A stretch of DNA of 64,000 nucleotides from Blastocladiella emersonii ATCC 22665 (GCA_025594325.1 JANHCV010000008.1:558001-622000), one strand, 5' to 3'; shown: positions 8,482 to 33,428, counted from the stretch's first letter. Numbers and translations are program-made. The notes: generated from the sequence alone by a model not told the origin.

Positions 8482-8842
8482 CTCGCGATGTGGGTTGTAT
8501 ATACACTTCGACCGTTTACGGCAGTCTCTCGGCAACGGCGGTGACGCGGTGGCGAAAAGTGTCTCGCACCGCCACGTGATGTCTCGCGTTCCGCGCGACG
8601 CGTGTGGCCAGAACGCCCGACGCTGTACAGAGGGGTGCCGTTGGTCGGGAGTGCCGTGGTGCGAACATCGCGAGGCGGCCAGTGAGAAGCCGATCCGGTG
8701 CGTTGAGCGGGCAAGTTCAGCCCAGAGGAATGCGATCGCAGCGAGGGTCACAAAATCAATGCCTCCCACTGAACCTGCCGTCAACGTCTGCTTCAACGCT
8801 TGACCTGAACGCGCACATTCCTAAGATATTTCGATACTCGCC

Positions 8843-13417: not shown

Positions 13418-13680
13418 AGTCAAGGCGGTTGATAAATTTCACAATTAAGAGGCAAGAAAGAGATAGTCACCGAGCCTGTATATAAATGTGTTGTTAGTTC
13501 GAGTACTCATTTGTGCCCAGCTGTCCCTCAGCGTTGGCAAATGCCCGTGTCTCGCACCACGTGATGTCTCGCGGTTTTTCGCGACGCGTGAATCCACCCG
13601 AGCGCGTGGACATCGTGCGACCACCAAGCTCAATCGCGGTGAGCTTTACACCTGCTGCAAAAACCTCCTGTAATCGCACC

Positions 13681-15868: not shown

Positions 15869-18800
15869 TAGAGCTCGTTGTTGTCCTCGTTGTTGTCCTC
15901 GTCCTCGTCCATCTCCAGGACAAACGGCGCCGAATTGGCTGGGGGTCGGTTCCAGGTCTTGTACATGACAAAGTACAGAATGTCGTCTGTCCACTTCAGG
16001 TTACTGTACTTCTTGCCGCGTACTGAGACCCGGGGTTCGTCCTTGTCTGGCACAGCAAGGCACTTGTTAAAGTAGGTGCCAAGAAGCCTGTTTAGGACTG
16101 TTGCTGTGTCACACTTGTAATACCCAAGCTTCTTGAAGTACTTGTGGATGTCCGCTTCAAACTTGGCGGGGATGGTGGCCTGGATGTTGAACTCCTCGGA
16201 CGTGCAGAGGTCCACGTCGTTGTGTTCCAGGAGCTTGTGCAGGACGTGGCCCTTGTCCTTGGTGTAAAAGTGCTGGATACGCTCCATGAAGCTCTCCGCG
16301 TTGTCGTCCCAGATGATCTTCATGTTGTCCATGCTCAGACCATTGAACTTGCGGATGAAGAAGGCCTTGCGGACAGAGAGGGAGATGGTCCAGTCCGGGT
16401 CCTTGATGGTACCTTTGCAGTAGGCACGCATGAGCTCCTTGGATGGTGGCTGGACGTTTGCCCATTCAAAAGACCAGCCCAACGTCATGACATCCTTAAT
16501 CTCGGGGTGCGCCTTGTAGTAGTACTCGGGGGAGTCGTCCATGACAATGTTGGCGACCTTGCAGAAGGCGTCAAAGACCTTGAGGCAGAAGGTCACAGCG
16601 GCCATCTCGTTCTCAAGATCTGTGTTCTTGACAATAGCCCGGTGAAGTTTGCCGACCGAGTCCAAGTCAATGACCTGTAACTTGTTCATGTACGCGCCGT
16701 GGCAACCATTGCTGATCATGAACACGATCTCGTTGTCATTGGGGTAGCGCACGCGGTAGATTGCCTGGAAGAAGTCGCGGGCAGGGACCCAGGACTCGTA
16801 GCGCGCGTACACCTTGTGGAAGACGTCTGGCTTTGAAAAGTTGACCCCCACAGTGATCTTGAGGTTGGCGATGACTATACGGACCGTATCGTCGCCCCAC
16901 ACAGAGTCAGGGTCAATGAGTTCCTTGTCCTCGTGGTTGGGGCGGTCGCCGTGGTAGAGCTTGATCTGCTTGCCAATCTTCCACGTCTCCTCGGCAAAGA
17001 CCCGCTCGAGGTACTCGCCAAAGGTCTGCACCGACCACTTGGTTGACTTCTTGCATGGTCGTGGGAGGAAGAGGTAGAGCTTCTTGTTGGCCTTGAGGTC
17101 GGCAATGATGTTGCTCTCCATGATGTCTTCAGCGGACTTCTCCTTGTCCTTGTCGTCGGTGATGAGGCTCATCTTGCGCGGCTCAAACTCCTTGCCAAGC
17201 GTGTTCGTGATCACCTTGATCTTACCATGGAGTATGGTCTTGATGTTGTGCTCAACAGTAAAGGAGTGGAGGACGTCCATGGTCAGGTTCGTGACAAACG
17301 CGTCCATGAAGATACCCTTGCTGCCCTTGTGCTCGCACAGCGTCTTGAAGGCCTTGAGGTTGGCCTCGAGGTTGTTGCGAATGGTGGTTGTGTGCAACTT
17401 GGCGTCCTGGAACATCTTGAGGACTGTCTTGGACTCGTCCACCACAACAATGTTGTAGGGCTCAGTCAAGTAGTGCAGCGAGCACGGCGAGACAATGAGT
17501 CGCTTGTGATCCCCCAGTGTCTTCTTGTCCTTGATGCTGCGGTAGTTGACAAAGCCAAGCTTCTGTTCGCGGGCTCGACCCTCGGTGTTGTGGGCCAGGG
17601 TGATGCGAGGTGTGATCCAGACCACTCGCGCGTCTGGGTACTTGGCAATGTAGTTGCAAACAGCGCCCGTCTTGTTGGAGCCCATGCCCGTGGCCAGCAC
17701 GTTGAACTTGGCCAGGGTAATGTTGTCGCAGGACAGGAACTGGTTGGGGCTGGTCACGTCCACTGGTACCTCAAGCGACTGCTCAAACTTGGCCATGGCC
17801 TTGGACTTGAACGCGGCTGGGAACCGCTTGTAGAAGATGGCCTTGACAAACGTGTCCAGCACCTGGTAGTTGTTGTTGCTGGCAATCTCGTTCCATCGGC
17901 CCCAGTACTTTTGCATGCGCTGAGCCGAGTTGTCCTGCTGCGACGTCCACGCCCAGAACTGGTCAAATGTGACCCCTTTGCGCATGGCCCATGTCATGAT
18001 CCGCCAGGTCACGTTGTTGTGGAATGCGTTCTCGGGGCTGATGGGGATGTTGTGGAGGATCTCGAGTGGCGTGGCGTTGTAGTAGAAGAAGTCGGGGTCG
18101 ATCTGCACGTCCTTGAACTCGGGGATGTCAAGGTCGTAGTCAAGGCAACCCGCGTGGCGCTTGGTCCGCGCTTCCTTGGCCTTGGCAGACACAAACTCTT
18201 CAAAGGACAGGTCCGAGACCGACACGCAGTTGGGGTCAAAGTCGCACTGGATCAAGTGCTTGGACAGGCAGTCCTTGTTGCCCGAGATCCACACACCGGG
18301 CGTCTTCTTGGGCTTGGACTGGTTGATGCACTTCATGAAGCGGTGCTTGCTGTACACGCTGGAGTCAAAGCCAAGCTTGACGTGGTCAGGGTGGCTGCAG
18401 AACAGCTTCAGGAACGGCATGTCCTTGAGCGTGACCGTGTAGTTGCTGATGACAATGTGCCACGACTTTTTGAGGTCCGTCTCGTAGCCGCAGACCTGGA
18501 GGTTGGCGCCGGGGAACTGGGTCAGGATGACCTTCTTGATGACGTCCAGGGTCACGTCCTTGCGGTTGCCTGGGCAGTCAATGTCAAAGTAGACCTTGGA
18601 CAGGCGATTGGGGTGGACCATCTCCTGGATGCAGCGGTTCTTGTCGAGGAGCCTGGCCAGGTCGGCTGTCTTGACCTTGGCAAAGTAGTGTGCTGCGATG
18701 GGCTGGCCATTTTTGTCAACGCCCTTGTCAACGAGGCGCTTGATGACCGTCTCGTCGTCTTGCAGCTCAGACAAGAGCGTGCGCTGAGGGCCCATGTCGC

Positions 18801-18879
18801 TGTCGCCACCATCCTTGCCATGGAACCACTTGAGACCAAAGGCGGTGCCATATTTACCGGGAACCTGCTTGCAAGGCAT
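15868..18879 (-). CDS. AEP primase + PriCT-2-like + SF2 origin-binding (UL9-like) helicase fusion, about 1003 aa
   Basis: AEP motifs KVYFDID, KKSWHIVI and FDSSVYSKHRFMKCINQSK; a W-rich PriCT-2-like block; helicase motifs TGMGSNKT, VVVDES, FMDAF, ITVGVNF and FQAIYRVR. Start placed at MPCKQ using the promoter motif. Confidence 0.8.
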   Translation of the reverse strand: MPCKQVPGKYGTAFGLKWFHGKDGGDSDMGPQRTLLSELQDDETVIKRLVDKGVDKNGQPIAAHYFAKVKTADLARLLDKNRCIQEMVHPNRLSKVYFDIDCPGNRKDVTLDVIKKVILTQFPGANLQVCGYETDLKKSWHIVISNYTVTLKDMPFLKLFCSHPDHVKLGFDSSVYSKHRFMKCINQSKPKKTPGVWISGNKDCLSKHLIQCDFDPNCVSVSDLSFEEFVSAKAKEARTKRHAGCLDYDLDIPEFKDVQIDPDFFYYNATPLEILHNIPISPENAFHNNVTWRIMTWAMRKGVTFDQFWAWTSQQDNSAQRMQKYWGRWNEIASNNNYQVLDTFVKAIFYKRFPAAFKSKAMAKFEQSLEVPVDVTSPNQFLSCDNITLAKFNVLATGMGSNKTGAVCNYIAKYPDARVVWITPRITLAHNTEGRAREQKLGFVNYRSIKDKKTLGDHKRLIVSPCSLHYLTEPYNIVVVDESKTVLKMFQDAKLHTTTIRNNLEANLKAFKTLCEHKGSKGIFMDAFVTNLTMDVLHSFTVEHNIKTILHGKIKVITNTLGKEFEPRKMSLITDDKDKEKSAEDIMESNIIADLKANKKLYLFLPRPCKKSTKWSVQTFGEYLERVFAEETWKIGKQIKLYHGDRPNHEDKELIDPDSVWGDDTVRIVIANLKITVGVNFSKPDVFHKVYARYESWVPARDFFQAIYRVRYPNDNEIVFMISNGCHGAYMNKLQVIDLDSVGKLHRAIVKNTDLENEMAAVTFCLKVFDAFCKVANIVMDDSPEYYYKAHPEIKDVMTLGWSFEWANVQPPSKELMRAYCKGTIKDPDWTISLSVRKAFFIRKFNGLSMDNMKIIWDDNAESFMERIQHFYTKDKGHVLHKLLEHNDVDLCTSEEFNIQATIPAKFEADIHKYFKKLGYYKCDTATVLNRLLGTYFNKCLAVPDKDEPRVSVRGKKYSNLKWTDDILYFVMYKTWNRPPANSAPFVLEMDEDEDNNEDNNEL

Positions 18880-19054
18880 GTTGTTATGATGAGGTAACAG
18901 AAATGGTGACAGGGCAGGTGCGTTTAAACGCGCAGGATTTAGCGCTAATGGCTGTGACCCGGGAGCCCTTGTTGGCATGGCCCATGACTTGCCACTGTCC
19001 TGACCCAGACCCGGCTGCCCTTGCGTGACCTGACCCTGACCCAGACACAACCTC

Positions 19055-19371
19055 CCCCATGAGCCCAACTTGGGAGCCAGTCGAGGCCGAGGTCACAATC
19101 CGCTCAAACCGTGACCTGGGACGCGACTGAGGGCGAAGAACCGGACCTCCACCCCCCATGACCCCGACTTGGGCGCCAGCAGAGGCCGAGGTCACAAACC
19201 CCCCATGAGCTCAACTTGGGAGCCAGTTGAGGCTGAGGTCACAATCCGCTCAAACCGTGACCTGGGACATGACTGAGGGCGAAGAACCGGACCTCCACCC
19301 CCCCCCCCCATGACCCCGACTTGGGCGCCAGCAGAGGCCGAGGTCACGAACCTCTCAAACCGTGACCTGGG
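19055..19371. repeat. Two copies of a ~146-150 bp unit with internal sub-repeats in the divergent helicase/recombinase intergenic region
   Basis: CCCCATGAGC(C/T)CAACTTGGGAGCCAG...CAAACCGTGACCTGGG recurs at about 19055 and 19201. Confidence 0.85.
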
Positions 19372-19496
19372 CCCTCCCACGGTCCATGACTTGCCACCAC
19401 CCTGACCCTGACCCAGGCCCAGCTACCCAGAAAAAAGAACGTTGCGTTCAAACGCACTTGAGCCCATGGAGCCTTTTTGTTGACAGTCAGTAAACC

Positions 19497-20624
19497 ATGT
19501 TGCTCGAGTCTCTTGCCTCTCAGGTCGCTGTTGCCCTCGCTCAGCATGTTGCCGCAGACGTGGTGCAGCAAGTCATGGACAAGCTCCAGCCCGTGTTTGG
19601 GTCAATCGACAAGCGCTTCAAGGACTTGGACGCGCGACTCAAGGCCATCAAGTCACACGACCCAGATCATGGCGCTGATCAGCAAGTCACTCCCATGGAA
19701 GTCGACACCCCCAAGGTCAAGTTTGCCGAGCTGACCGAGGATGCCATCAAGGCATGTGTCAACGCGCCTGTGGTGGACAAGAACAGGGAGCAGGCCGAGC
19801 TGGACGCCGACGACAAGGCCAAGACGGCTCGTGTACTCCTTGCCTTTGCCGCGTCAGGTCTGGACATCCAGGATGTCGAGGCTGTGTCCAAGGCCGTGGC
19901 CACCTACCGTGCGACCAAGGGGTCCAAGAACGTCCAGGGTCTGCAGGTCGAGACGCTCAAGGCCCTGGCCAAGTACTGCACCTGGAACGGGTGGACCGAA
20001 CTCGGGGCCAAGTACACAGAGGCCAAGAAGCAGGACGCTGCCAACTTCCGCAACGCGCGCAAGGAACTCGAGTCTGGTGCGCTCCCAAGCCGTGACGCCA
20101 TTTGCGCCGCTATTGTTGATGCAAAGGGCTCGGGCACGGGGCTCCTGCGTCTGTACCTCCAAGTTGTGAGTGCGGTGCGCTCTGACCCTGCGTTCCTGAC
20201 CACGAAGCCAACCACTGGGTACCCGTACTACGACCCAGAGACCCAGATTCTGGCTGGCGATGTCATTGTCAAGACAGAGGGCTGTGGCTACAACTTCTTG
20301 CACACAGTTAGTGAGCCCAAGGTCGCCGCCGCTCTCAAGCGTATCCTCGCCCAGCGTCTCGCCAAAGGTCATGACTTTGTCTTCAACAACTACACCCTCA
20401 AGGAGCTCAAGGACACCACGCTCCGCAAGAGGGTTAGCAGCACCTGGTGTACGTCAATTAGTCGGGCTGCAAAGACGGTCGGCTTTGAGGATGGCGGCGT
20501 GGCAGTGATCCGCCGTATCTCCACCAGTGAGAACTTTGCTGCGCAGCAAGCTATTGCCAAACGCGCGCACGAGATGGGTCACAGCGTCCCCGTTGCGCTG
20601 ACCTACTACATGACGCCTCAGTAA
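19497..20624 (+). CDS. Tyrosine recombinase-like protein (375 aa)
   Basis: Catalytic-type residues in order: R (VSAVRSD), K (VKT), xxRR (VAVIRR) and AHEMGHS-x6-YY at the C-terminus. Confidence 0.75.
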   Translation: MLLESLASQVAVALAQHVAADVVQQVMDKLQPVFGSIDKRFKDLDARLKAIKSHDPDHGADQQVTPMEVDTPKVKFAELTEDAIKACVNAPVVDKNREQAELDADDKAKTARVLLAFAASGLDIQDVEAVSKAVATYRATKGSKNVQGLQVETLKALAKYCTWNGWTELGAKYTEAKKQDAANFRNARKELESGALPSRDAICAAIVDAKGSGTGLLRLYLQVVSAVRSDPAFLTTKPTTGYPYYDPETQILAGDVIVKTEGCGYNFLHTVSEPKVAAALKRILAQRLAKGHDFVFNNYTLKELKDTTLRKRVSSTWCTSISRAAKTVGFEDGGVAVIRRISTSENFAAQQAIAKRAHEMGHSVPVALTYYMTPQ

Positions 20625-20652
20625 TCCTTTTGTCTCCGCCTTTGTTGATACA

Positions 20653-21765
20653 ATGTATGCCCACAAAGAGCCGCTCACAGACGCACAGCAAGCATTCCTG
20701 ACAGACTTGTACTACAAGCGCGGCCACGTAGGTGTTGGCATCCGTCAGCTCTTTGACATTGTGTCCAGAGAGAACACAGGGAAGCACATCTACTGCGCCC
20801 AGCTTGAGAGATGGCTCGGCGAACAGTCCGTGTGGCAGCAGTACAAGCGCGCACCTCAGAAGCGCCGAGACATTCGAAGCATCAACTCAACGAGCCCCGG
20901 TCGCAACTTCCAGCTTGACCTCATTGACATGGGCGAAAACGGTACGTACAAGGGCTTCCGTTACATTCTTACGTGTGTCGACCTGGCGAGCCGCCGCGTC
21001 TACCTCCAACCCATCAAGACCAAGGACAAGACGCGGGAAGCATGGTCCAGCGTGGTCGCCAAGCACAGCCTTGCACCTGCCACAATCCAGACGGACAATG
21101 GGACCGAGTTCTTTGGCATAGAGGCCGGGACTGAGGCCAAGCACATCAAGGGCAAGGCAGGAGTGCCATATGGTCAAGGTGTCGTTGAGCATATGAACGG
21201 GACCATCCGCCGGATGCTCACACCGTGGCTGTCCATCCCGGGCAACAACGACTGGCCCAAGCACCTCGAGACCATTGAATCTGTGATCAACAGCAGCAAG
21301 TCGAGGGCCGCGGGCAGGGCGCCCAACGAGTTCTATGACATGCCCCGCGAAACGGCCAAGGAAGAGCTCAAGGCAATCCGAGCTGCCAAAGGCAAGCCCG
21401 AGGGCGACCCTCTGAGCGCGTTGCTGGAGGTAGGGACCCAGGTCCGAGTCCGCGAGCCGTACAAGACTGCCATGGAGGCCAAGGGGAAGCCAGTCTGGTC
21501 GCCAACCGTGAGCCAGGTCCAGGTTGTGCGCAAGGGGTTGGGCGTGAGCAATCCAAGCTACAAGGTCCAAGGCCTCAAGGGCTTCTACCCTCGAAGCGAC
21601 GTCCAGCCAGTCACAGCGACCCAGGACCCGCCAACAAGGCAGCGCGTAGGTCCAAGTCTTCCAAGGCTCCCTGCTGCGCGCACCCCAGTCACGCCAAGGG
21701 AGCCCTCGACCCGGGTCAGGCGCGTCCCAGTCCGAGTCCAAGAAAAGTGGGACCGCGGGCTTTAG
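20653..21765 (+). CDS. Retroviral-like (rve, DDE) integrase of Polinton type (370 aa)
   Basis: FQLDLIDM, YILTCVD..SR, IQTDNGTEF and GVVEHMNGTIR (D-D-E triad), plus a C-terminal VGTQVRV...WS...YKV SH3-like region. Confidence 0.92.
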   Translation: MYAHKEPLTDAQQAFLTDLYYKRGHVGVGIRQLFDIVSRENTGKHIYCAQLERWLGEQSVWQQYKRAPQKRRDIRSINSTSPGRNFQLDLIDMGENGTYKGFRYILTCVDLASRRVYLQPIKTKDKTREAWSSVVAKHSLAPATIQTDNGTEFFGIEAGTEAKHIKGKAGVPYGQGVVEHMNGTIRRMLTPWLSIPGNNDWPKHLETIESVINSSKSRAAGRAPNEFYDMPRETAKEELKAIRAAKGKPEGDPLSALLEVGTQVRVREPYKTAMEAKGKPVWSPTVSQVQVVRKGLGVSNPSYKVQGLKGFYPRSDVQPVTATQDPPTRQRVGPSLPRLPAARTPVTPREPSTRVRRVPVRVQEKWDRGL

Positions 21766-23705
21766 AGCAGGGTCCAGTGGCTTTGAATGATGACCTGGCA
21801 GTCGTTGGCAACTGCGACCGACGGGATCCAGATGAAAGAGTAGTTCTTGGCCGCGTCAAGGTACTCAATGCTCAAGAACTGAAGGAACTGGACATTGCCT
21901 TCAGCGCGGCACCCGGTGACAAGCAACACTGCAATCATGTCCGTCATATTGTACAGCGCAAAGTTCACAGTGTGGGCTCCAGGGAGCGCGCCGTTTGCGT
22001 AGTAGCCCTTTGCATGGACGAGGTAGTAGCCACTGACAGGGGGTTTGACGCATCCATTGATCACAGACGTGAACGCGCCTGCCGTGGACTGGAACGCAAA
22101 GGTGGCCGGGCCCGTTGATGCTGTGCCGCCAATGATCTTGCCGCCCGTGGTCACTCTGTTTGTAGAGCGGTGCTTGGCCTGAGCGACGTACCGGGTCGTG
22201 CCAGACCGCGAGTCAACATACGCCTTGTTTGCTGCGTCGGTGCCTGCCACTGGAGCGAGGTCAAGGGTGAGCTGCCCTGTGAAGCGACCAGTGCCATTGA
22301 CGCGGAGCCTTTCTGTGCCAAGCGTCGCCGAGCCCACGACCACATTGCCACCACCTGCCACAAGGGAGACCCCGCCCGTGGTCGCAGACGCAATCTCAAT
22401 GTTACCCGCCGCTGTGCATGCCAGGTTGCTTCGCAGTACGCCTGCCTGCTTAAAGTCGACGTACGTCAATGTATTGGCAGCCGAGTCAAAGACAAGGTTT
22501 GCACTTGTGGCATTCCGGACCAGGACGTTGGGCACAGTCAGTTGCTTGCCAACTCCAAGACCACCAGCAATGGTGACTGCTCCAGTGCTTGATGTCAAAC
22601 TGTCCGTCGTATTTGCAAAGGCAAAGGCAGCGCCGAGTCCAAGGGTGGACTGGGGGAGCGTGCCAATGACCGAGGCTGCGCTCACGGCCGTGACCTTGGC
22701 TGAGACGTCGGGGAGTCGTGCCAGGTCAATGGTCCCTGCAAGCTTGGCCGAGTCAATGCCAGATGCCAGCTTGGCGCTGGTCAGGGTCCCGTCGGCGATG
22801 CGGGCAGGGTCAAGGATCCCAGTGAGCTTGACTGCCGACACGTCCGCGACCTTGGCGTCCATGACTGCGCCTGCTGCCAGGTGGGCTGTTCCAATGGACC
22901 CAACGTTGAGCTTGCCCCCATCAATGCCAGTTGCCAGCTTGGCGTTGGTCACGGCCGCGTCTGCCAGGACCAGGGAGCCGACCGTGCCCGCTGCCAGCTT
23001 GGACCCGTCGATGCCAGCTGCCACCTTGGCGTTGGATACGGCACCGTCTGCCAGGGCTCCCATCCCAATAGTCCCTGCAACGAGCTTGGACCCAGACACG
23101 GACGCGACCTTGGCATCTGTGACTGCCAGGTCGATGAGAGCCGCTGTGCCAACCGTGCCTGCCACAAGCTTGGACCCGGACATGGACGCGACCTTGGCAT
23201 CAGTCACTGAGCCGTCTGCCAGGACCGAGGTCCCGACCGTGCCTGCCACAAGCTTGGACCCGGACACAGACGCAACCTTGGCATCAGTCACTGAGCCGTC
23301 TGCCAGGACCGAGGTCCCAACGGCTGGGAGGTTGGACGCACTGAGCACGCCCACAAGCTTGGACGCAGACACAGTGTCCAGCTGAGCATTGACGAGCTTG
23401 CCTGTGACCTGCCCTGCTGTAATCGTGGCGACCTTGTCAGCCGTGACGCTGGCCGGGAGCAGCTGTGCCGTGCCAACTGACTTGACATAGAGCCCTGCTG
23501 CGCCCACGCCAAGGGTCTGGTTGTCGACCTTGGCCGAGACAGTGGTCCCTGAGACTGCCACGCCAGGGCCAGCAACAGGTGCGCCAACCGTGGCATACAC
23601 GGCACTGATGGCCGCGTCAACGTAGGCCTTGGACACGTCCGGGACCCCCGTGGTAGACACGGTCGGAGACGCAGTACTTGAGACGTTAAAGATATTCTTG
23701 ACCAT
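21762..23705 (-). CDS. Putative fibre/spike protein with 25-aa repeats (647 aa)
   Basis: Tandem LADGSVTDAKVASVSGSKLVAGTVGT-type repeats (75-bp period), a TSSTGAVTIAGGLGVGKQL fibre-like motif and a beta-rich C-terminal head (KPPVSGYYLV). ATG at 23705 is preceded by the viral promoter motif. Confidence 0.7.
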   Translation of the reverse strand: MVKNIFNVSSTASPTVSTTGVPDVSKAYVDAAISAVYATVGAPVAGPGVAVSGTTVSAKVDNQTLGVGAAGLYVKSVGTAQLLPASVTADKVATITAGQVTGKLVNAQLDTVSASKLVGVLSASNLPAVGTSVLADGSVTDAKVASVSGSKLVAGTVGTSVLADGSVTDAKVASMSGSKLVAGTVGTAALIDLAVTDAKVASVSGSKLVAGTIGMGALADGAVSNAKVAAGIDGSKLAAGTVGSLVLADAAVTNAKLATGIDGGKLNVGSIGTAHLAAGAVMDAKVADVSAVKLTGILDPARIADGTLTSAKLASGIDSAKLAGTIDLARLPDVSAKVTAVSAASVIGTLPQSTLGLGAAFAFANTTDSLTSSTGAVTIAGGLGVGKQLTVPNVLVRNATSANLVFDSAANTLTYVDFKQAGVLRSNLACTAAGNIEIASATTGGVSLVAGGGNVVVGSATLGTERLRVNGTGRFTGQLTLDLAPVAGTDAANKAYVDSRSGTTRYVAQAKHRSTNRVTTGGKIIGGTASTGPATFAFQSTAGAFTSVINGCVKPPVSGYYLVHAKGYYANGALPGAHTVNFALYNMTDMIAVLLVTGCRAEGNVQFLQFLSIEYLDAAKNYSFIWIPSVAVANDCQVIIQSHWTLL

Positions 23706-23725
23706 GTTTAACCTTAAGCAACAGA

Positions 23726-23977
23726 ATGATTTCCAGCGACCATGACCTGAGCCTGGATGAGTGGCGGGAGCACCTCGCCGGGACCATGCCCGTGCCAAGC
23801 AGCTGGTACAGCAAGAGCGACGAGGACAAGGCCAAGTGGCTACAGAAGCGCGACTGCAAGGCCAACCGGTACACGCACGTCGACAACGAGGCAGCGCGGG
23901 CAGAGCGGGTTAAGATCCGGATCTACAAGGCACTCAACGCCAAGCGCCGGGACCAGGGGGCAAATAGCACCGTCTGA
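23726..23977 (+). CDS. Small charged viral hypothetical protein (83 aa)
   Basis: Viral-like codon usage, divergent from the fibre gene, with TTCTTG-N8-TAAC at 23695-23712 upstream. Confidence 0.5.
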   Translation: MISSDHDLSLDEWREHLAGTMPVPSSWYSKSDEDKAKWLQKRDCKANRYTHVDNEAARAERVKIRIYKALNAKRRDQGANSTV

Positions 23978-24054
23978 GGGACAAAAGGCACCTGCCACGG
24001 GGAAAAAGGTACCAACAGGGGGACGTTTTATTTTTGGTCCATACAGTAACCATC

Positions 24055-25770
24055 ATGGGCCGAAGAACAGTACCAGATCTACTTGCAAGAGTGACCAAGG
24101 CAACCGGCGGGCGCATCATGGCCGAGCGCCTTGCAGGGCAGAAGATCAAGGCAACCATTGACGGCTGCGAGTACACGTTCCCCAATGCCAAAGAGCTCCT
24201 CGACGTCTGGGTGCCTTACATCCTTGCCTTTGACTACAAGGTGACGCCCGAGAGCTATGCCAACGACTTTGGCTGCAAACGAGGCGACTCGCTGTTCTAC
24301 CTCAAGCACCAGGACAGCGTCACTGGGTACGAGGTCAAGGACCTCCAGGAGCACGTCCAAGACACGCTTAAAGCGTGGGAAGAGCACCAGGCAACGGGCA
24401 AGGTCACTTGAGTCCCAGTCGCTCCACCAGCGGCAAGCCCCAGACCAGAGGCCCCCGAGTCAGCCACGGACAGCGACAGGGGCAGCAGCGAAGAGGAGCG
24501 CGACGAGCTGGCAGAAGAGATCTCGCGAGCCCTGGACGTCATTGACGAGGACGCTGTACCGGACCACTTGCTCCCCGTGCCTGTCCGGCCAGTCATGCCC
24601 GAGCAGTACCCGGTCGAGGCCGGCGACTATGTTGGTCAAGACATTGACGAGTACGGCGCCATGATCCCCGGCCAGTACCTGATCCAGAATGACAATGACG
24701 GCGGCAACGACCCGCCCCCAAGGCTTGACGACGGCACCCGCGACCTCGTGGTCATGCCACCAAGCTACGGCCCGGACGTGGCACAGCGGCAAGGCGTGTA
24801 CAACGAGGGTCACGTCCACCCGGCCATGGACGAGGCACGCATGATCAAGGGCTCCAAGGACTTGCAGGTCTACAACCCCGAGCGGGCGCTGACAACCACG
24901 GACGACATGGAGGTCGATGTTGTCCAGAACTTTCAACAGTTTAACCAGTTCGTGTACAACAGCTACACGCAGCAGAACACGCAGAACGTCAACATGCGGC
25001 AGTTCATCACCCAGTACGAGAACAACTACTACGAGCAGAACGTGGACATGCGGCAGCAGATCCTGGTCCAGTACAACAATGACCCGAACGTCATGGCCGC
25101 GCTCGAGCTCATTGCCTTGCAGTTTGCCGGGTCCCAGGTCATGCAGTACCAGGCGTACCAGGCGCTCATCGAGCAGTCGGCGGCCGCTCAGGGACTGGCC
25201 ATGGACGCATTTGCCAACCTCGCGTCCGGGATTGTGGACACGCTCCGAGCCAAACGCAACAACTTTGCCCGCCAGATTGACGCTGGCAACCGCGCGCTTG
25301 TGTCTGAGATTGCCACGGGCATGTCCTCTGCGCTCAGCAACCAGCAGGTGCTCATGAACCAGCTCGCAAGCGGCGTCCAGGGCGCGATCCAAGGGCAGAC
25401 CCAGAGCAACGAGGCCATGACCAAGACGCTCCAAGACCTTGGGTCCAAGCTGGACACGATCCCTGCACCCCAAGTCATTGTCCAGCCTGCCAACACAAGC
25501 GGCCTTGAGGCCATGATCAGGGAGCTGGCCGCGCAAAACAATTCCGGCGGTAGTTCTAAGAAGACCGACATGCTCCTCGAACAGATCCTCAAGCAACTGG
25601 GCTACAAGAAGCCGACCGACGCGAAGCTGTTCACAGACAAGCGGGCAGCGGGTAGCGGGCTGACAGCGCCCAAGATCCAGCGTCACCAGAAGATCCCTGA
25701 GCGGCCCGTCAAGCAGGTCCGCGAGACCCCAAGGCGCAGCGGCATTGTGCTTGACCTCGGCTGGGACTGA
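24055..25770 (+). pseudogene. Viral hypothetical protein (~571 codons) with a single in-frame TGA at 24409-24411
   Basis: ORFs 24034-24411 and 24568-25770 are in the same frame. The 52 intervening codons are open and protein-like (VPVAPP...SSEEERDELAEEISRALDVIDED). Confidence 0.7.
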
Positions 25771-25779
25771 CGCCCTTTT

Positions 25780-25799
25780 TTGTTGGCAGTCTTTAAATG
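25780..25799 (+). promoter_or_regulatory. Example of the viral bipartite promoter TTGTTG-N8-TAAATG (ATPase gene)
   Basis: The same spacing recurs at 19477, 26610, 27873, 28166, 28939, 23724(-), 29491(-) and 18900(-). Confidence 0.75.
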
Positions 25800-26594
25800 T
25801 ACGACATTGTTGCCATTGACAACGGCTTTACGCGCAACGACGACGGCGAGCCGCTGCCGATCCCCAAGCACCCGTTCACCATGAACGTCATTGGCGCCAA
25901 GGGTCAGGGCAAGTCGACGCTGATCGCAAACATGGTCTGCTTCCCGCACTTTTACAAGGGCCAGTTCGACAACATCTGGGTCTTTAACCCGACGTTCCAC
26001 GCCGACGACAAGTACGAGTACATTGCCAGTCAACCGATCCTGCGACCGCCCAAGAAGGAGCGCAACGTGCTGGACCCCCAGGAGCGCGACCCGGACCGGC
26101 TCAAGATCAAGCCAGGGTGCATTGTCACGGACCCCGAGCAGTTCATCCCGACCCTGCTCAAGATGCGCCAGGACCTGACCAAGACATTCGAAGAGTCTGG
26201 CAAGAAGGCGCTCCAGGACCAGCTGCTGATCATTGACGACGTGCTCGGGCTCAAGCTGCTGAGCCACAGAACGCTGACCAACTTTCTGTGCAACTCGCGG
26301 CACTTGAAGATCAGCTGCATCATTGGCGTCCAGCGGTGGTGTGCCCTGCCCAAGACTCTGCGCATCAATTGCAGCTACAGCGTTGTCTACCCAATCTATG
26401 ACAAGACCGAGGTCCAGACGCTGCACAAGGAGATTGGGTCGCAGTTCGACCTCAAGGAGTTTGAGGCCATCATTGAACAGCTCTTTGACACGCGTACTGG
26501 CAACACGAAGCGACGCTTCCTGGGCGTCAACAACCAGAACCCGCCCAAGTACCGGCTCGTAGACAGCTTCAGCGAGTGGATCGTGAAGCAGTAG
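25797..26594 (+). CDS. A32/FtsK-like genome packaging ATPase
   Basis: Walker A GAKGQGKS, Walker B LLIIDD, and the SRHLKISCIIGVQ...LPKTLRIN signature of the A32 family. Confidence 0.93.
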   Translation: MYDIVAIDNGFTRNDDGEPLPIPKHPFTMNVIGAKGQGKSTLIANMVCFPHFYKGQFDNIWVFNPTFHADDKYEYIASQPILRPPKKERNVLDPQERDPDRLKIKPGCIVTDPEQFIPTLLKMRQDLTKTFEESGKKALQDQLLIIDDVLGLKLLSHRTLTNFLCNSRHLKISCIIGVQRWCALPKTLRINCSYSVVYPIYDKTEVQTLHKEIGSQFDLKEFEAIIEQLFDTRTGNTKRRFLGVNNQNPPKYRLVDSFSEWIVKQ

Positions 26595-26634
26595 ACTCTT
26601 GACTTTTTTTTGTTGCCGAGTCCTAAACTAAACC

Positions 26635-27855
26635 ATGTCCAGTACCAACGCCCAGTTCTCGCAGGTCCTGTCCAAGACTCTCCCTCCCAAGATGTTGTTC
26701 AACCTGCCCAAGGAGTCCGTCTATGCCGAGCGCCAGACCGTCCAGTTCACGGCTCAGGGCGGCCCTGAGTTTGCTCCTGGCAACAGCATCAGCGTCCTGC
26801 TCCCGCCGCGCGATGACATGATGGACACGCACTGTACTTTCCTGCAGTTCTCGGCCAAGACCACGGACGCCAACGTTGCTTTCTGCAATGGTATCTTCAG
26901 CGTCATTGACCGTGTCCGCATCTACAGCGCGTCCGGTGCCCTACTCGAAGAGCTCCCGTACTACAACCTGCGTCAGCGCATCGAGGCCGACGTGACGGTC
27001 CCCCAGTACCTCAAGGACTTGTGTCTCGGCGTGGCACAGGGCTACTTTGCGTCCGGCGCAGACAAGTTCGCTGTCTCATCTGGGCTGCACCGGTACATGC
27101 TGCCCATCAAGTCGGCCCTGCTGGCAAACCAGAAGCACCTCCCAATGAAGTACACGGGCGGCATCCGCGTCGAGTTCACCCTTGCACCTGGCAGTGACGC
27201 CTGCGTGGTCAAGAACAATGCCATCCCGGGCTACACAGTCAAGGACGTCTGCATCGTCTCGGACCTGATCAAGCTCAACGACCAGCAGATCGCGGTCATG
27301 GACGCGGCCTTCAAGAAGCAGGGCCTCAAGCTCTTTGGCACGACCTACAACCACCACTTCCTGAACTACTCGGTGCCCAACTCGACGCTCAACATCTCGG
27401 ACCGCTCGGCCTCACAGAAAGACATCCTGCTGTCGTTCCGCAACAATGCCGTGCTCAATGACAATGCCAAGGACTCGTTCCTTTGTGCCAAGACCATTAC
27501 ATCGTACCAGTTCAGCGTGGCCGGCCGACTCTTCCCTCAGCGACCCATCCGCTGTGACGACTACGCGTCTGAGGCGTTCGTTGAGCTGACCAATGCCTTC
27601 CATGGCCACGTCATTGGCGCTGGCCTCACAGTTGACAAGTTCAACGCGCCGGCCAAGGGTACCTTTGTCGTTGGCCGTGACCTCAAGTCGAGTCGCACCG
27701 TGGTCAGCGGCGACAAGTCTTGCAAGAGCCAGGCCGTGGACATGCAGGTGATCCTGACTTCAAGCGTGGCCCCGAACCAGCGCGTGGACGCCTTCATTGG
27801 CATCGACGTGGTCTACGAGTTCCTGCCAACCGGCGAGATCAACATCTACAAGTAA
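26635..27855 (+). CDS. Major capsid protein, double jelly-roll, PLV type (406 aa)
   Basis: Size, beta-strand pattern, motifs SVIDRVRIYSASGALLEELPYYN, HLPMKYTGGIRVEFTL, SYQFSVAGRLFP and a C-terminal SG, and position next to the ATPase and penton genes. Confidence 0.85.
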   Translation: MSSTNAQFSQVLSKTLPPKMLFNLPKESVYAERQTVQFTAQGGPEFAPGNSISVLLPPRDDMMDTHCTFLQFSAKTTDANVAFCNGIFSVIDRVRIYSASGALLEELPYYNLRQRIEADVTVPQYLKDLCLGVAQGYFASGADKFAVSSGLHRYMLPIKSALLANQKHLPMKYTGGIRVEFTLAPGSDACVVKNNAIPGYTVKDVCIVSDLIKLNDQQIAVMDAAFKKQGLKLFGTTYNHHFLNYSVPNSTLNISDRSASQKDILLSFRNNAVLNDNAKDSFLCAKTITSYQFSVAGRLFPQRPIRCDDYASEAFVELTNAFHGHVIGAGLTVDKFNAPAKGTFVVGRDLKSSRTVVSGDKSCKSQAVDMQVILTSSVAPNQRVDAFIGIDVVYEFLPTGEINIYK

Positions 27856-27897
27856 CAGCCCTGTCCTTTCTTTTCTTGCGTAGAGTTAAACCCCGCC

Positions 27898-28164
27898 ATG
27901 ATCTTCCGTAACCTCTGGACCAACTTTAGCAATGTGCTCGGCCAGGTCGGGTCCTTTGTCAACAAACACATGCCGACCGTCCTCAAAGGCGTCAAGACCG
28001 TGTCCAAGTTCTTTGAGCAGTCGCACAACCCCGCCGTGAGCTCCATTGCGCAGATGGTGTCCAAGGGCGCCAACCTCGCCCAAGACATTCACACCTGGTA
28101 CAACCGACCAACGAGCGAGATCTTTGAGGCAGACGCTGACGACACGGGGACAGCTGTACAATAA
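27898..28164 (+). CDS. Small amphipathic-helix protein, candidate core/membrane-penetration protein (88 aa)
   Basis: N-terminus FRNLWTNFSNVLGQVGSFVNK; it lies between the MCP and mCP genes and has its own promoter motif. Confidence 0.65.
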   Translation: MIFRNLWTNFSNVLGQVGSFVNKHMPTVLKGVKTVSKFFEQSHNPAVSSIAQMVSKGANLAQDIHTWYNRPTSEIFEADADDTGTAVQ

Positions 28165-28182
28165 ATTGTTGTCTTTGTTTAA

Positions 28183-28926
28183 ATGTCCGAGTACAAGACG
28201 CTGACCATCTGCAGCCGCGACCTCAAGAATGGCATCCTGTACCTGCCACGACCCCTGTCCGTGCGCGGCGTCAAGGTCAACTCGGCGTACCTCTGCAACA
28301 GCTGGCACACGGTCAACTCCAAGGCCAACAAAGTGTACCTGACCCAGAGCCGTGGCGCGCTGACGTTCCCGGGTACCATCACTGTCCCTGACAGCAACTA
28401 CACAGTCAAGACGTTCACGGCCACGCTCAAGAGCCTGCTCAACAACGCGCCGTCGTCGTACCTCTGGCAGGGCTCCTGGGACGTCCAGGTCGACTCGACT
28501 ACCCAGAAGATGCGCCTGGCCAACGACACGGTTGACTTTACAATTGGAACAGGGACGGCGTTGCTGAACGTCCACATGGGCTTTGTTGGAGCGTATGGCT
28601 ACAGCAAGGTCCAGTACGGGTCGGCGCTGGTCAACATCTCGCCCATCAACCTGCTTCACGTCTACTTGCGCAACCTTGGCACCCGGCTCGCGGACAACAT
28701 GTTCTTGGCGTACCCACAAGACAACGGCGTACTTTGTAGCATCCACGTCACGCAACCCTTTGGCAGCTGGTTCGAGCATCGACCACACATGGGCGACTAC
28801 TTTCGCTTTGACGCGCAGGGACAGGCCCAGCAGATTGACTGTATTGACATTGACGTGGTAGACAAGAACCTGCGCTCTGTCGACTTTCTTGGCCAACCCT
28901 TCTACGTCGAGCTCGCGTTCATCTGA
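28183..28926 (+). CDS. Minor capsid (penton) protein, single jelly-roll (247 aa)
   Basis: ITVPDSNYT and C-terminal IDIDVVDKNLRSVDFLGQPFYVELAF, typical of PLV/Polinton minor capsid proteins. Confidence 0.85.
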   Translation: MSEYKTLTICSRDLKNGILYLPRPLSVRGVKVNSAYLCNSWHTVNSKANKVYLTQSRGALTFPGTITVPDSNYTVKTFTATLKSLLNNAPSSYLWQGSWDVQVDSTTQKMRLANDTVDFTIGTGTALLNVHMGFVGAYGYSKVQYGSALVNISPINLLHVYLRNLGTRLADNMFLAYPQDNGVLCSIHVTQPFGSWFEHRPHMGDYFRFDAQGQAQQIDCIDIDVVDKNLRSVDFLGQPFYVELAFI

Positions 28927-28957
28927 CGTTGACTTTAATTGTTGTTCTACTGTAAAC

Positions 28958-29059
28958 ATGATCCTCGAGACGCTCCTTGTTGCCACCAACGCCCTGATCC
29001 TTGTAGCCAACCTGGCCATTGTCGGGTACACAAGCAAAGTATTCCGCGCCGTAGAGTAA
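28958..29059 (+). CDS. 33-aa single-pass hydrophobic peptide (not in the ORF track)
   Basis: MILETLLVATNALILVANLAIVGYTSKVFRAVE, directly preceded by TTGTTG-N8-TAAAC. Confidence 0.6.
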   Translation: MILETLLVATNALILVANLAIVGYTSKVFRAVE

Positions 29060-29319
29060 GCAACAACATGTGCTTTAAATTCTTTCTGCGAAGGCATAGT
29101 AAGACACAGGACAATGAATACTGGCTCTACTGCATCAACGCCCCGCGCACCTTCCACAAGCATCCCTTGGACTGGCCGTCCGGGCCCCCAGACAACAGCC
29201 AACTACACAGCCATCCGCAACGTGGCCCTGCCAGGTGTCAAGGTTGTGTACACTGTCTGCTTTGAATAGATCCTTCAAGTTAACTTGGTTAGCTACCTTG
29301 AAGCCTTTACTGGTCGCTC

Positions 29320-29472
29320 TCAGACTACCCGCCGGTATGTGTACTTGTGCCCACAGCATGGGTACACGACTTGGACCCACAGCAGCTCATTGTCATGGAC
29401 CCAGCTGGGAGCATCATAGTGATCGCATGGCGGCTTGGGCAGGGGGACGATCTCTTTGATACAGCCTCGCAT
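29320..29472 (-). CDS. 50-aa Cys/His-rich viral peptide
   Basis: MRGCIKEIVPLPKPPCDHYDAPSWVHDNELLWVQVVYPCCGHKYTYRRVV, with TTGTTG-N8-TAAC one base before the ATG. Confidence 0.5.
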   Translation of the reverse strand: MRGCIKEIVPLPKPPCDHYDAPSWVHDNELLWVQVVYPCCGHKYTYRRVV

Positions 29473-29703
29473 AGTTACAGTAGTCCAACAAAGTTTAAAT
29501 TGACAAACGCATTCAACGCACTTGGCATGACGTAGCAACGGGACACACTACGACATTGACATAAAGTAGAAATAAGGGGTGCTCCGCCCTGTCCAGGAAG
29601 CGTTGGCCAAGCGCCTCCCAGACTGCTCCATCCTGGAGGTCTCCTTTCATGGTGGCCAGCCACTAATCAGAGTTCCAACATGGAGCAGGCATCATTGCTA
29701 ATA

Positions 29704-29811
29704 CTCATTGAACCACACAGCGCCAACACACCCAAAAGACTCATCAAACCACACAGCGCCAACACACCCAAAAGACTCATCGAACCACACAGCGCCAACA
29801 CACCCAAAAAG
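29704..29811. repeat. 36-bp tandem repeat, three copies
   Basis: CTCAT(TG/CA/CG)AACCACACAGCGCCAACACACCCAAAAGA repeated head-to-tail without spacers. Confidence 0.9.
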
Positions 29812-30179
29812 AGAGAGATAGGAATGGATCAAAGAGCACTGCATGAGTAGCTAATCCAAGCAGCGCCCACAATCCAGACCAAGACAGGGGTTAACCAAGT
29901 CATTGCCGTGCACATACAGATGACTCAGCAGATCCCAAGCCAAAGGAATAGGGAAGTGGCCACCCGCAATGTCGGCCATGCACCCATACCAGAAGCCTAC
30001 TGTGAGCGTTGGGCGCATTGCAAAGATGGCCTATACAATCAGAGTAGGGCTTGAGGCAGTGAATCTGTGACATGGCTTTCATGGTGAGTGGCAAAGAGCA
30101 GCTCTCAGGGCAGGGGGAGTGGGGGGTTCTTATAGGGCCAGGGTTAGCGCTAAATCCTCAGGCACAGGGCCCTGATCTG

Positions 30180-30508
30180 GCACCCCCAACGTGACCCCCC
30201 GCCTGACCCCCCGCCTGACCCCCCGCCTGACCCCCCGCCTGACCCCCCGCGTGACCCCCCGCCTGACCCCAGACCTGGCACCCCAGACCCTCCATGACCC
30301 GGCACCCCCGACCTGGCACCCCCGACCTGGCACCCCAGACCTGGCACCCTGACCTGGCACCCCAGACCCTCCATGACCCGGCACCCCCGACCTGGCACCC
30401 CAGACCCGGCACCCCCAACCTGGCACCCCAGACCCGGCACCCCAGACCTGGCACCCTGACCTGGCACCCCAGACCCTCCATGACCCGGCACCCCAGACCT
30501 GGCACCCC
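30180..30508. repeat. C-rich short tandem repeats abutting the right TIR
   Basis: CCTGACCCCCCG 12-mers followed by GACCTGGCACCCCA-type 13-14-mers. Confidence 0.85.
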
Positions 30509-31458
30509 AGACACTCCATGACCTGCCACGCTGCCTTCCTGCCTGCTAAGACGCTGCCTGCTAAGACGCTCCCCTGCCTTGACCTTGTACCTTGACCCCT
30601 GTCCTGCCCAATACATTGATGCTGCTAAGGACGCTCCCCCATCCTTGACCTCCCCCCGTACCCTGACCTCTTGTCTTTGAAAGTCCCAAATTCATGGCAA
30701 AAAAGGGTAGTGTATATATATACTCTGCTGTTTTTTGCCATGAATTTGGGACCTTTACGGTGAGTGGCTTCATAGCAGCTGCTTGCGGCAGGTGGTCAGG
30801 GACTGGCTCGGGGACTGGCTCGGGGACTGCTCACAGATCGACTTGCAGCTGTGCTCAGGGACCAGACCAGGGAACTCTGTCAGTGGGTAGCCGCAGCTGC
30901 GCTGCTCTTCGTCTCGCTGCGCTTGCAGGCCGCCGCCGACCGCTCGGGGTAAGCAATGGTCAGTCTGAGTGGTTGGTCAGGGACGGGCTCAGGGATCTGC
31001 TCTTGGACTTGTCTCGCAGATCAACTCGCAGATCGACTCGCAGCCGTGCTCAGGGACCAGACCAGGGAACTCTGTCAGTGGGTAGCCGCAGCTGCGCTGC
31101 TCTTCGTCTCGCTGCGCTCGCCGGCCGCCGCCAACCGCTCGGGGTAAGCAATGGTCAGCCCAAGGGGTTGGTTAGGGACGGGCTCGGGGGTCAGGTCAGG
31201 GACTCACTCCTGGACTGCTTGCCCCTCCCTTCCACCCACCCTCCCGCCTACCTGCTTCGGCCTTCGGCCTCCGTCCGCGTGTCGTGTTCCCTAAGGGAAC
31301 ACAACATTTGAATCCGACATTTTATTAACCACCCGGGGTAAGCAACGGGGTCTCACGTGGTTACCCCGAGTGACTGTCGCCGACCGCTCGGGGTAAGCAA
31401 TTGGTCAGCCCGAGTGGCAGTGGGTCAGCCCATGTCGTATCCCTTAAGGGATACGACA
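30509..31458. repeat. Right terminal inverted repeat (950 bp)
   Basis: Reverse complement of the left TIR minus one 195-bp unit; ends in the perfect palindrome TGTCGTATCCCTTAAGGGATACGACA. Confidence 0.92.
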
Positions 31459-31463
31459 CTTAC

Positions 31464-31710: not shown

Positions 31711-32153
31711 GCCCAGAATGCGAGCGTGGATGATGTTGAACCCGATCAGTAGTAAATGCATAAGTGTGGACTAGAGATCTCAGTTGAGAAGCAGAAAACG
31801 TGATACGGTGAGCGCTGCCAGTCGAGTTGCGTCGTTCTCCATGCTCTCGACTGTGAGCGTGCGCGAAAGCTGGGGAACGCGACGCGTGTCTCATAACACG
31901 TGATGTCTCGCAGATTGCGCGACGCGTGCGGACACGCATCCGTGCGGACACCGATGGGCGCGATATCGCCGGGCAGATCGAAAAGACGACTGAATTGGCG
32001 GTTTCGATCCGTGCCAGGCGAGCACTATTCCTGGATCAGTGAACGCGAGAACCCGTCTCCCATAGCTCCCCCGCCTATGATCATGCTTGCAACAGAAATT
32101 GCTGAGGCCCGGATCACACAATACCCTTGTACTCCGCAATCCCTGAACCCGCC

Positions 32154-33428
32154 ATGAAGCTAAATGACATACTGCAACAAAGCCCGTTCGGTGACTGGGC
32201 AGCGACCGCGCACGGACTCGATAACAAGACGGCCTTGATCATCCAACAGTTCCACCTGATTGGACTTGCCGCGGCCTGCTTGGCGATCCCGTTTGCGAGC
32301 TACACGGCGTATCATCACTTCTACCGGCAGCGCCGCCGACTCTTTGCGCCGCGAACGTCCGAGTCAGCTCGCTTGAAGCCCATGCCCAACGAGTGCTTCA
32401 CGACTTCATTCCTCGCCTTTGTTCCGACTGTGATCGTTTGGCATCTCCTGCTCTACTTCGATGCGGGATCGCCCCTCTTGCGCCACTTTGTTCAAAACAT
32501 GCGCTATACGGTTTCGGAAATTGGGTGCATCCTGTACATCGTCGGGATCCTGTCAAGCATTCCGTCGGGCGCTGCGACCATTGCCAGTGGCTTTTCCCAG
32601 GAAACGCTGCCGCTTTGGAAGCGGCTCGTGCTCGCTGTGCCCGTTCCGAAACCCAAGATTATCAACCTGATCATGGTCTACTTCCTGGTGGTCCATGTCA
32701 TCGCAACCAACGGCATCACAATCGGCCTCGGGCTTGCTACAACCTGGGCCAAAGCACGGATCTGGCGCTCCGCGCTTTGGACGGTGTGGATCGTGTTCAC
32801 TGCGTTTCTTGCGGTTTCTCTCGCGCTGTTTGGCGTTCAGCTTCTCGTCATCATTGATGCGAACGAGCGTCATCGTCTGAAAACCGTAGTCCCGTCACGG
32901 CCCGAAAGCCTCTTGTCAGTCAAGGACGAGAACGTCGCCGCGCCAGCAGCCAATCCTCCGATCAAAAAGACGGCCCCTCTGCAGAGTCAGCCGGGCACTG
33001 GCGCGGCCAAGAAAAGCTTCTTCCGGTCCTCGCACTCAAGCCAAGGCGAGTCGAGTAGCTTGACGAAGCAAGGCGAATCCCCCGACGCCCGATCTCTGCG
33101 CCGCTCGCGTTCTTTGAGCCTCAAACAGTTGCGTGGAGTAATCCTGCTAGTCTCCTTGTTCGCCAGCGTTTACGTGATCGTGGACGTGTCGACGATGGTC
33201 GCGTTCGAACTCATCCACGCGAATCTGTCAAGCTCAGCGACAACGCTTTCTGGTGACATGCTGTTCGTTATTCCTGCGGCCTACCAGATCATGATGCCTC
33301 CGACAGCCGCCCTGGTTTACTTCATCGGCTTCACGGTTGTCATCGTGTTCTCCAAGCCGCCCTCGAGTACCGGTTCGCTCGCACGGTCGAGTTCATCACG
33401 GTCGCGATCGAACTCGCGGCAGTCGTAG
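32154..33428 (+). CDS. 7TM (GPCR-like topology) protein, paralog 3
   Basis: Intact ORF; ATG at 32154 aligns with the paralog starts. Confidence 0.8.
   Translation: MKLNDILQQSPFGDWAATAHGLDNKTALIIQQFHLIGLAAACLAIPFASYTAYHHFYRQRRRLFAPRTSESARLKPMPNECFTTSFLAFVPTVIVWHLLLYFDAGSPLLRHFVQNMRYTVSEIGCILYIVGILSSIPSGAATIASGFSQETLPLWKRLVLAVPVPKPKIINLIMVYFLVVHVIATNGITIGLGLATTWAKARIWRSALWTVWIVFTAFLAVSLALFGVQLLVIIDANERHRLKTVVPSRPESLLSVKDENVAAPAANPPIKKTAPLQSQPGTGAAKKSFFRSSHSSQGESSSLTKQGESPDARSLRRSRSLSLKQLRGVILLVSLFASVYVIVDVSTMVAFELIHANLSSSATTLSGDMLFVIPAAYQIMMPPTAALVYFIGFTVVIVFSKPPSSTGSLARSSSSRSRSNSRQS

Follow-up and report, generated by a model that had tools for sequence, protein, structure and literature searches.

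We analysed a 64,000-nt stretch of the Blastocladiella emersonii ATCC 22665 genome (GCA_025594325.1, JANHCV010000008.1:558001-622000; hereafter the window, with positions counted from its first nucleotide), which holds a 16,735-bp insertion at 14724-31458. This is a whole integrated polinton-like element, whose inverted repeats and termini can be read directly and which is flanked by a 5-bp target-site duplication (TSD), CTTAC, at 14719-14723 and 31459-31463. The element carries 12 genes, and a short two-part sequence, here called the box, stands directly before most of their start codons. On the basis of its form, position and conservation, the box is very probably the core promoter or initiator of each single gene in an endogenous family of polinton-like viruses (PLVs) of B. 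emersonii.

The terminal inverted repeats (TIRs) are about 1.1 kb long and their arms are 98-99% alike. Three 195-nt tandem units (14978-15562) lie in the left TIR (14724-15868) and two (30830-31204) in the right TIR (30509-31458), and each contains a 76-nt near-perfect palindrome with a TA run at its centre (15622-15697 and 30680-30755). The DNA between the last gene and the right TIR contains three direct repeats of 36 nt, together with arrays of short C-rich units of 12 nt and 14 nt (29700-29809 and 30170-30523).

The major capsid protein (406 aa) is encoded at 26635-27855 on the plus strand. A structure model based on a 56-sequence alignment shows a double jelly roll (pLDDT 89.9), and supersedes a model made from four sequences only, which was useless (pLDDT 39). 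Foldseek places this fold with giant-virus capsid proteins (E = 5.9e-23), including PBCV-1 Vp54 (E = 5e-18), and also matches virophage capsids. Adjoining the capsid genes is the gene for an A32-like packaging ATPase of 265 aa (25797-26594, plus strand; PF04665, E = 1.6e-12, above the gathering score). Downstream of the capsid gene are an 88-aa gene (27898-28164, plus strand) and a 247-aa gene (28183-28926, plus strand), both conserved in the distantly related loci L007, L008 and L010, where the latter also lies 3' of the capsid gene. We refer to the 247-aa product as a putative penton protein, a name given from position and size only, and it had no family match in the library scan. A 33-aa hydrophobic peptide gene (28958-29059, plus strand) is 59-64% identical in subfamily B of the element, and a similar open reading frame (ORF) of 36 aa occupies the same place in L007. 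The fibre-like protein (647 aa; 21762-23705, minus strand) is encoded by a gene with 84-nt repeats and matches both the phage tail-tip domain PF09327 (E = 3.7e-9) and the tail fibre families of PHROG.

The largest protein of the element (1003 aa; 15868-18879, minus strand) is a UL9-like origin-binding superfamily 2 (SF2) helicase, or replication initiator. PF02399 is found in 5 of 10 members of its family (best E = 1.1e-20), the family profile matches a 'Replication origin-binding protein' in the PDB (E = 3e-9), and NCBIfam CyRepA1 also matches (E = 3.4e-19). An rve-type integrase of 370 aa (20653-21765, plus strand) matches PF00665 at E = 2.7e-6, under the gathering score, as well as PHROG transposases; a search with it yielded a single relative, P0172, which itself carries PF00665. 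The capsid, ATPase, integrase, fibre and helicase matches bear out the view, put forward in an initial annotation of this DNA, that the genes are viral. The same annotation called the 375-aa gene at 19497-20624 (plus strand) a recombinase, a label for which we find no support: neither the Pfam, PHROG and NCBIfam-type library scans nor the PDB gave it a family or structural match.

Three further genes are conserved among copies of the element or in its relatives. The 83-aa gene (23726-23977, plus strand) is 72-96% identical in other copies and 38% identical (E = 1.4e-10) to an 87-aa gene in the same position of L008, and the 50-aa gene (29320-29472, minus strand) is 60-94% identical in other copies. 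The Q/N-rich 571-aa gene (24055-25770, plus strand) has conserved counterparts in L008 and L010. In the window copy a single in-frame stop, without a frameshift, interrupts it, whereas it is intact in copies L001 and L004 and aligns in two frames in L003. Members of its family are rich in Q, N and A, their invariant positions are only scattered P, Q, L and R residues, and they have no conserved acidic catalytic cluster; judged by its sequence, the protein is probably structural. PDB sequence searches with the capsid profile, the 375-aa protein and the 571-aa family returned nothing.

Library scans of every ORF found no RNA polymerase or DNA polymerase domain, the protein-primed type included, and no family match to a cysteine or adenain-type protease, although a very divergent protease may be among the proteins that have no annotation. 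The element therefore has no recognisable RNA polymerase of its own, as the initial annotation had said. Because capsid, ATPase, integrase, TIRs and TSD are present without a polymerase, the carrier of the box is an integrated PLV and not a Polinton/Maverick. It shares TIRs, an rve integrase, a capsid module and a TSD of 5-6 bp with the Polintons/Mavericks, but differs in that neither their protein-primed family B DNA polymerase nor their adenain-type protease was detected in any ORF. Endogenous PLVs have been reported from protists and from early-diverging fungi such as Spizellomyces and other chytrids, and resemble the present element in their double-jelly-roll capsid, A32 ATPase, rve integrase, TIRs, length of 15-40 kb and multi-copy endogenous state, whereas the Blastocladiella capsid has close relatives in its own genome only.

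A two-part box at the gene starts

The box consists of a T-rich part ending in (G/C)TTG, an 8-nt spacer that is fixed in length and free in sequence, and the initiator TAA(A/C). Across the nine strong sites, the six core columns are T (8/9), T (9/9), G (7) or C (2), T (9/9), T (9/9) and G (9/9). The eight spacer columns have no base preference, and the initiator reads T, A and A at 9/9 each, followed by A (7) or C (2) and then C (6) or T (3). The box always points toward its gene, with its TAA element 0-11 nt before the ATG and overlapping it in two cases.

The strong sites on the plus strand precede the 375-aa gene (19476-19495, 22.7 bits), the 83-aa gene (23694-23713, 22.3 bits), the ATPase gene (25779-25798, 25.0 bits, its last bases overlapping the ATG), the major capsid gene (26609-26628, 20.2 bits), the 88-aa gene (27872-27891, 20.3 bits), the putative penton gene (28165-28184, 26.3 bits, overlapping the ATG) and the 33-aa gene (28938-28957, 23.8 bits). 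Those on the minus strand precede the fibre gene (23706-23725, 23.1 bits) and the 50-aa gene (29473-29492, 21.5 bits). The 83-aa and fibre boxes stand back to back, and the former overlaps the fibre start on the opposite strand, so that its conservation is partly forced by coding. The other three genes have lesser forms. A weak variant precedes the helicase gene (18882-18901, minus strand; 14.8 bits, and 5.7 in the leave-one-out test), and only the upstream half of a box is found at the integrase start (20641-20660, plus strand; 13.3 bits), where copy L004 has a full one. The 571-aa gene is preceded by a loose variant, read directly as a T-rich run, about 9 nt and GTAAC (24026-24050, plus strand), which is kept in L005. 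The nine sites quoted in the initial annotation were correct in every letter, coordinate and strand. Eight of them are strong, the helicase site (with the helicase ATG at 18879) is the weak one, and the list lacked the strong 83-aa site and the looser 571-aa site.

The strict pattern TTGTTG-N8-TAAA occurs five times on the two strands of the 64 kb, against 0.03 expected, and none of 100 shuffles reaches this number. All five matches fall in the element, on its plus strand, and adjoin an ATG. The relaxed pattern of the initial annotation gives 11 matches, all within 18881-29491, so that the 47 kb of host DNA in the window is free of them. A motif sampler applied only to the 45 nt upstream of gene starts recovered the box in 10 of 11 genes, with a log-likelihood of 111.8 compared with 79.9 ± 2.1 for shuffles. 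With a weight matrix derived from the sites, nine positions score 20 bits or more, all of them in the element, in sense orientation and 0-12 nt before a conserved ORF start. The best host score is 12.6 bits in the window and 14.9 bits in the flanks of six loci, which amount to 92.5 kb of host DNA, and none of 15 annotated host genes has a box before its ATG. When each strong site was left out of the matrix in turn, no more than 10 of about 128,000 positions scored as high as it or higher. By our own arithmetic, the 12 gene starts provide about 156 qualifying positions among the roughly 33,500 strand-positions of the element, or about 0.005 per site. The comparison of viral with host upstream DNA thus upholds the earlier description of a fixed-spacing motif at gene starts that is specific to the element.

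We considered whether the box might arise by chance, or as a side effect of a GC-rich genome having AT-rich DNA between the genes. The intergenic DNA of the element is indeed more AT-rich than its genes, in a context of 58% GC. The excess of strict matches, motif log-likelihood z-scores of 12-15, and an exact spacing and orientation that hold across subfamilies and distant relatives all speak against this explanation, and we reject it.

A different possibility is that the box marks gene boundaries: its T-run would serve the preceding gene as a terminator or 3'-end signal, and its TAA would be a translation-context or RNA-processing mark on longer transcripts. The T-run usually begins 3-15 nt past the upstream stop codon, and T-runs are common terminators. 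Against this, the box is also present at divergent junctions, where the gene that follows it is not preceded by another on its strand (fibre, 83-aa, 375-aa, 50-aa and helicase genes), its variable distance to the ATG (0-11 nt) does not make a fixed translation context, and the fixed 8-nt spacing of the halves points to a single DNA-binding protein complex. A boundary signal of this kind is therefore quite unlikely.

Copies, relatives and decay of the element

Capsid proteins of this type have 37 annotated entries in the B. emersonii genome, which form seven clusters at 90% identity and are spread over at least 11 contigs. They are 83-97% identical to the capsid protein of the window, and the corresponding helicases are 57-93% identical. 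Outside this genome, capsid identity is at most about 42%. Only 15 matches below E = 1e-30 were found among 1.84 billion representatives, and searching the capsid alignment against IMG/VR and JGI metagenome contigs gave no relatives.

All nine genes of a diverged subfamily (L003, L005 and L006), also from this genome, have a T/C-rich box ending in TG, 8 nt and (G/T)TAA. Comparison of orthologous promoters between subfamilies, whose capsids are about 85% identical, reveals a clear footprint: the TAA and the 8-nt spacing are kept in all eight, and when the promoters are anchored on the TAA, the T-box is 69% identical compared with 39% further upstream. Several spacers are wholly replaced between subfamilies with their length unchanged. 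The distant capsid relatives L007-L010 (30-42% protein identity, 44-48% GC) have a T-rich run, about 9 nt and (G)TAA(A) 0-15 nt before almost every gene, with a motif log-likelihood of 169 against 132 ± 3 for shuffles. In Allomyces arbusculus, a helicase homologue (L128, 50% identity) is preceded by the same 12-nt palindrome as the helicase gene of the window (described below), a T-run, about 9 nt, TAA, 4 nt and the ATG. Because it is kept in the diverged subfamily, in L007-L010 and upstream of the A. arbusculus helicase, the box is an old property of the virus clade and not of the host genome.

UL9-like helicase homologues with 29-50% identity are present at L128, L129 and L131 (A. arbusculus and A. 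javanicus) and at L130 (Thoreauomyces humboldtii). These Allomyces and Thoreauomyces loci are at contig ends or stand alone, with no capsid genes nearby, and L130 also encodes a D5_N protein and a chromodomain protein. Among the B. emersonii copies, L001 is without the helicase side of the element, and in L004-L006 the sequence to the left of the 375-aa gene is dissimilar to the helicase of the window. L008 contains, between its penton and integrase genes, a gene for an HNH endonuclease fused to an AP2 DNA-binding domain (8188-8733, minus strand), which is absent from the Blastocladiella element. The public gene models of L001 and L003-L006 fuse adjacent viral ORFs through predicted introns, yielding for example a 303-aa product from the 88-aa and penton genes and others of 564-638 aa, and several small genes and the integrase are uncalled in the public annotation of other copies.

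The integrated copies also carry a mutational signature. The observed/expected ratio of CpG is 0.78-0.83 in the element versus 1.24-1.29 in its flanks (1-14723 and 31459-64000). Over 10,160 aligned positions, the window copy differs from L001 (L001:2765-12924) at 113, of which 98 are transitions and 75 of these are C/T changes next to a G. In the outer TIR arms, seven of eight differences are at CpG. None of the 113 differences falls within the nine promoter boxes, where two were expected. Read from these alignments, the pattern appears to be the signature of cytosine-methylation-driven decay aimed at integrated copies. Such decay fits silenced proviruses and is silent on which machinery transcribes them.

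What might read the box

The fixed spacing of two short conserved halves suggests that one protein complex would bind the T-box and begin RNA synthesis at the A-run. Transcription would then start in or beside the TAA element and give near-leaderless mRNAs, one per gene. This layout is that of poxvirus late promoters, in which a T-containing core and a 5-7 bp spacer precede an initiator, short and conserved, within which transcription starts and which often extends over the start codon; asfarvirus late promoters are likewise bipartite, and in both groups post-replicative mRNAs are almost without a templated leader (PMC5294985). The likeness to poxvirus-type late promoters drawn in the initial annotation is thus in agreement with published work. 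As known here from sequence, the Blastocladiella box shares the T-rich core, the short set spacer and the A-rich initiator abutting or overlapping the start codon. It differs in having a core of about 10 nt rather than about 20, which ends in a fixed (G/C)TTG, a spacer of 8 nt rather than 5-7, mostly C as the base after the A-run, and a setting of 58% GC. A TATA box for RNA polymerase II would be expected 25-30 nt upstream of the transcription start (PMC5294985), whereas the TAA lies 0-11 nt from start codons that we take as genuine, since capsid residues 1-10 stay conserved in proteins of as little as 42% identity. We therefore reject a TATA box.

Because the element is without a polymerase and the box is too near the start codons to be a TATA box of polymerase II, the likeliest reader would be a virus-type transcription machinery supplied in trans, for example by a Mycodnaviridae-like giant virus of Blastocladiomycota. 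Integrated copies would be silent in the absence of such a virus. Giant viruses of zoosporic fungi and Blastocladiomycota have been described only recently (PMC13533422). That virophage promoters mimic those of the helper, as the initial annotation stated, is an established principle, and the promoter motifs of a helper giant virus are reported to be carried by virophages and by at least one PLV. The pairs Sputnik-mimivirus, mavirus/EMALE04-CroV and PgVV-14T-PgV resemble the present case in that a small capsid-encoding element without an RNA polymerase has one short motif before most of its genes and integrated copies at many host loci, and in that each type of element has a motif of its own. 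The Blastocladiella element differs from them in that it is known without a helper or a motif-bearing helper genome, its motif is spelled differently from those published, its host is a fungus, and it has a UL9-like origin-binding helicase. No cysteine protease was found in it either, although an adenain-like maturation protease of this class is expected in virophages (Maveriviricetes).

Given the late-promoter architecture, the matching of promoters by virophages and PLVs, and the known giant viruses of Blastocladiomycota, a helper virus is the best single explanation and our leading candidate for the reader of the box, which we hold to have an even chance of being right. A fuller scenario, in which B. 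emersonii harbours dozens of methylation-silenced virophage-like PLV copies whose box copies the late promoter of an undescribed Blastocladiella giant virus (from the Mycodnaviridae or a relative), is put forward tentatively, as somewhat less probable than not. The further proposal of an antiviral defence role is speculation.

Several points weigh against a helper. When IMG/VR was scanned for the box in two forms, the matches listed included no giant-virus sequence with it and were mostly chance-like single occurrences, so that the scans are uninformative. The only triple match listed (L023) is on a 26% GC contig with tandem paralogues and has no tie to gene starts, and the loci with most relaxed matches listed are AT-rich and likewise not associated with gene starts. 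The letters of the box differ from all published helper-matched motifs compared, autonomous PLVs that replicate without a helper have been described, and one of the unannotated 375-aa, 83-aa and 88-aa proteins could be a transcription factor. The origin-binding helicase, the rve integrase and the presence of copies at 57-97% identity on no fewer than 11 contigs would suit a nuclear element working with host polymerases just as well.

The control region beside the helicase gene also bears on this last possibility. Here, two 12-nt palindromes, GCGTTTAAACGC at 18920-18931 (upstream of the helicase promoter and kept in L003 and in A. arbusculus at L128:1405-1494) and GCGTTCAAACGC at 19444-19455 (upstream of the promoter of the 375-aa gene), bracket a 617-nt divergent control region. 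They conform to GCGTT(T/C)AAACGC, lie about 20-25 nt upstream of the two promoters and are kept in subfamily B. On their sequence and position they are candidate operator or origin boxes, to which the origin-binding helicase or a regulator may bind. A related half-site is found near the 50-aa gene, at about 29500-29525. Between the palindromes, a repeat of about 100 nt stands in four copies (19054-19408) that take up the divergent region separating the helicase and 375-aa genes, a possible origin or control region. The combination of paired palindromes with a helicase looks like the origin layout of small nuclear replicons that borrow host polymerases, a further point against a helper.

The element could accordingly be an autonomous nuclear PLV, in which the box would be an initiator-type core promoter for host RNA polymerase II, perhaps aided by a factor of the element such as the 375-aa protein, and the helicase would recruit host DNA polymerase, with no helper involved. 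Besides the helicase and its palindromes, which are arranged as in small nuclear DNA replicons, this agrees with the integrase, TIRs and TSD, with the many copies from several sublineages in one long-cultured strain, and with the precedent of independently replicating PLVs. The CpG-directed decay also suggests that the host has reason to silence the copies. On the other hand, a TAA 0-11 nt from conserved starts, with two overlaps, leaves no usual TATA distance and would produce almost leaderless mRNAs, and both promoter and terminator would have to fit into the 18-45 nt gaps between genes. Moreover, neither 92.5 kb of host DNA nor the starts of 15 host genes show anything similar to the box, and the box is kept in relatives of very different base composition and so probably of different hosts. 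We regard a helper-free nuclear element as possible but rather doubtful.

A third candidate is a reader supplied by the element itself, with the 375-aa, 571-aa, 83-aa or 88-aa protein acting as a novel polymerase or specificity factor. All four are without family assignment, and the box is conserved across the clade together with the 83-aa and 571-aa genes. However, the absence of an acidic catalytic cluster from the 571-aa family tells against this, and the 375-aa gene has no homologue detected in distant relatives that still carry the box. To our knowledge, all four proteins are also small for any known DNA-dependent RNA polymerase. A self-supplied reader is consequently improbable. For the 571-aa protein in particular, a role as polymerase was rejected, as it has no catalytic-looking invariants.

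In principle, small viruses that repeat one promoter motif ahead of each gene, perhaps matching that of a helper, are already known, as are PLVs in chytrid genomes. What is new is the host group, this bipartite box and its conservation throughout the clade, the link to an origin-binding helicase module that Allomyces shares, and the CpG decay. The papers on fungal PLVs that we consulted describe no conserved promoter, and our literature search found no paper linking Blastocladiella to such an element. We know of no virophage or helper-dependent PLV from any fungus. If the box is a late promoter in the style of giant viruses, it would provide a sequence signature to seek in fungal giant-virus genomes, and would predict the promoter of a virus that has yet to be seen. 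It would also extend the virophage type of relationship, perhaps with virophage-based defence, to the fungal kingdom, as the first triangle of fungus, giant virus and hyperparasite, and would do so in a laboratory model organism. Even if the idea of a helper fails, a compact promoter architecture conserved across a PLV clade has been defined, CpG-targeted decay has been documented, and several public B. emersonii gene models have been corrected.

Surroundings of the element

The ORFs on either side of the insertion (13564-14757 and 32127-33428) are paralogous, with 300 nt at 69% identity on the same strand, and had no Pfam match. The insertion site belongs to a small family of repeated genes or to a repeat of older date. 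An ORF 2 kb to the right of the element (33688-34806, minus strand) has a borderline match to FNIP repeats (E = 9.8e-5, 22.8 bits), and FNIP-repeat proteins have been reported as common to CroV and its virophages. Further to the right, at 37186-39825 on the minus strand, lies the pol region of a Ty3/gypsy-type long terminal repeat retrotransposon, with reverse transcriptase-RNase H and the zinc-binding and core domains of an integrase, in a stretch of 62-70% GC.

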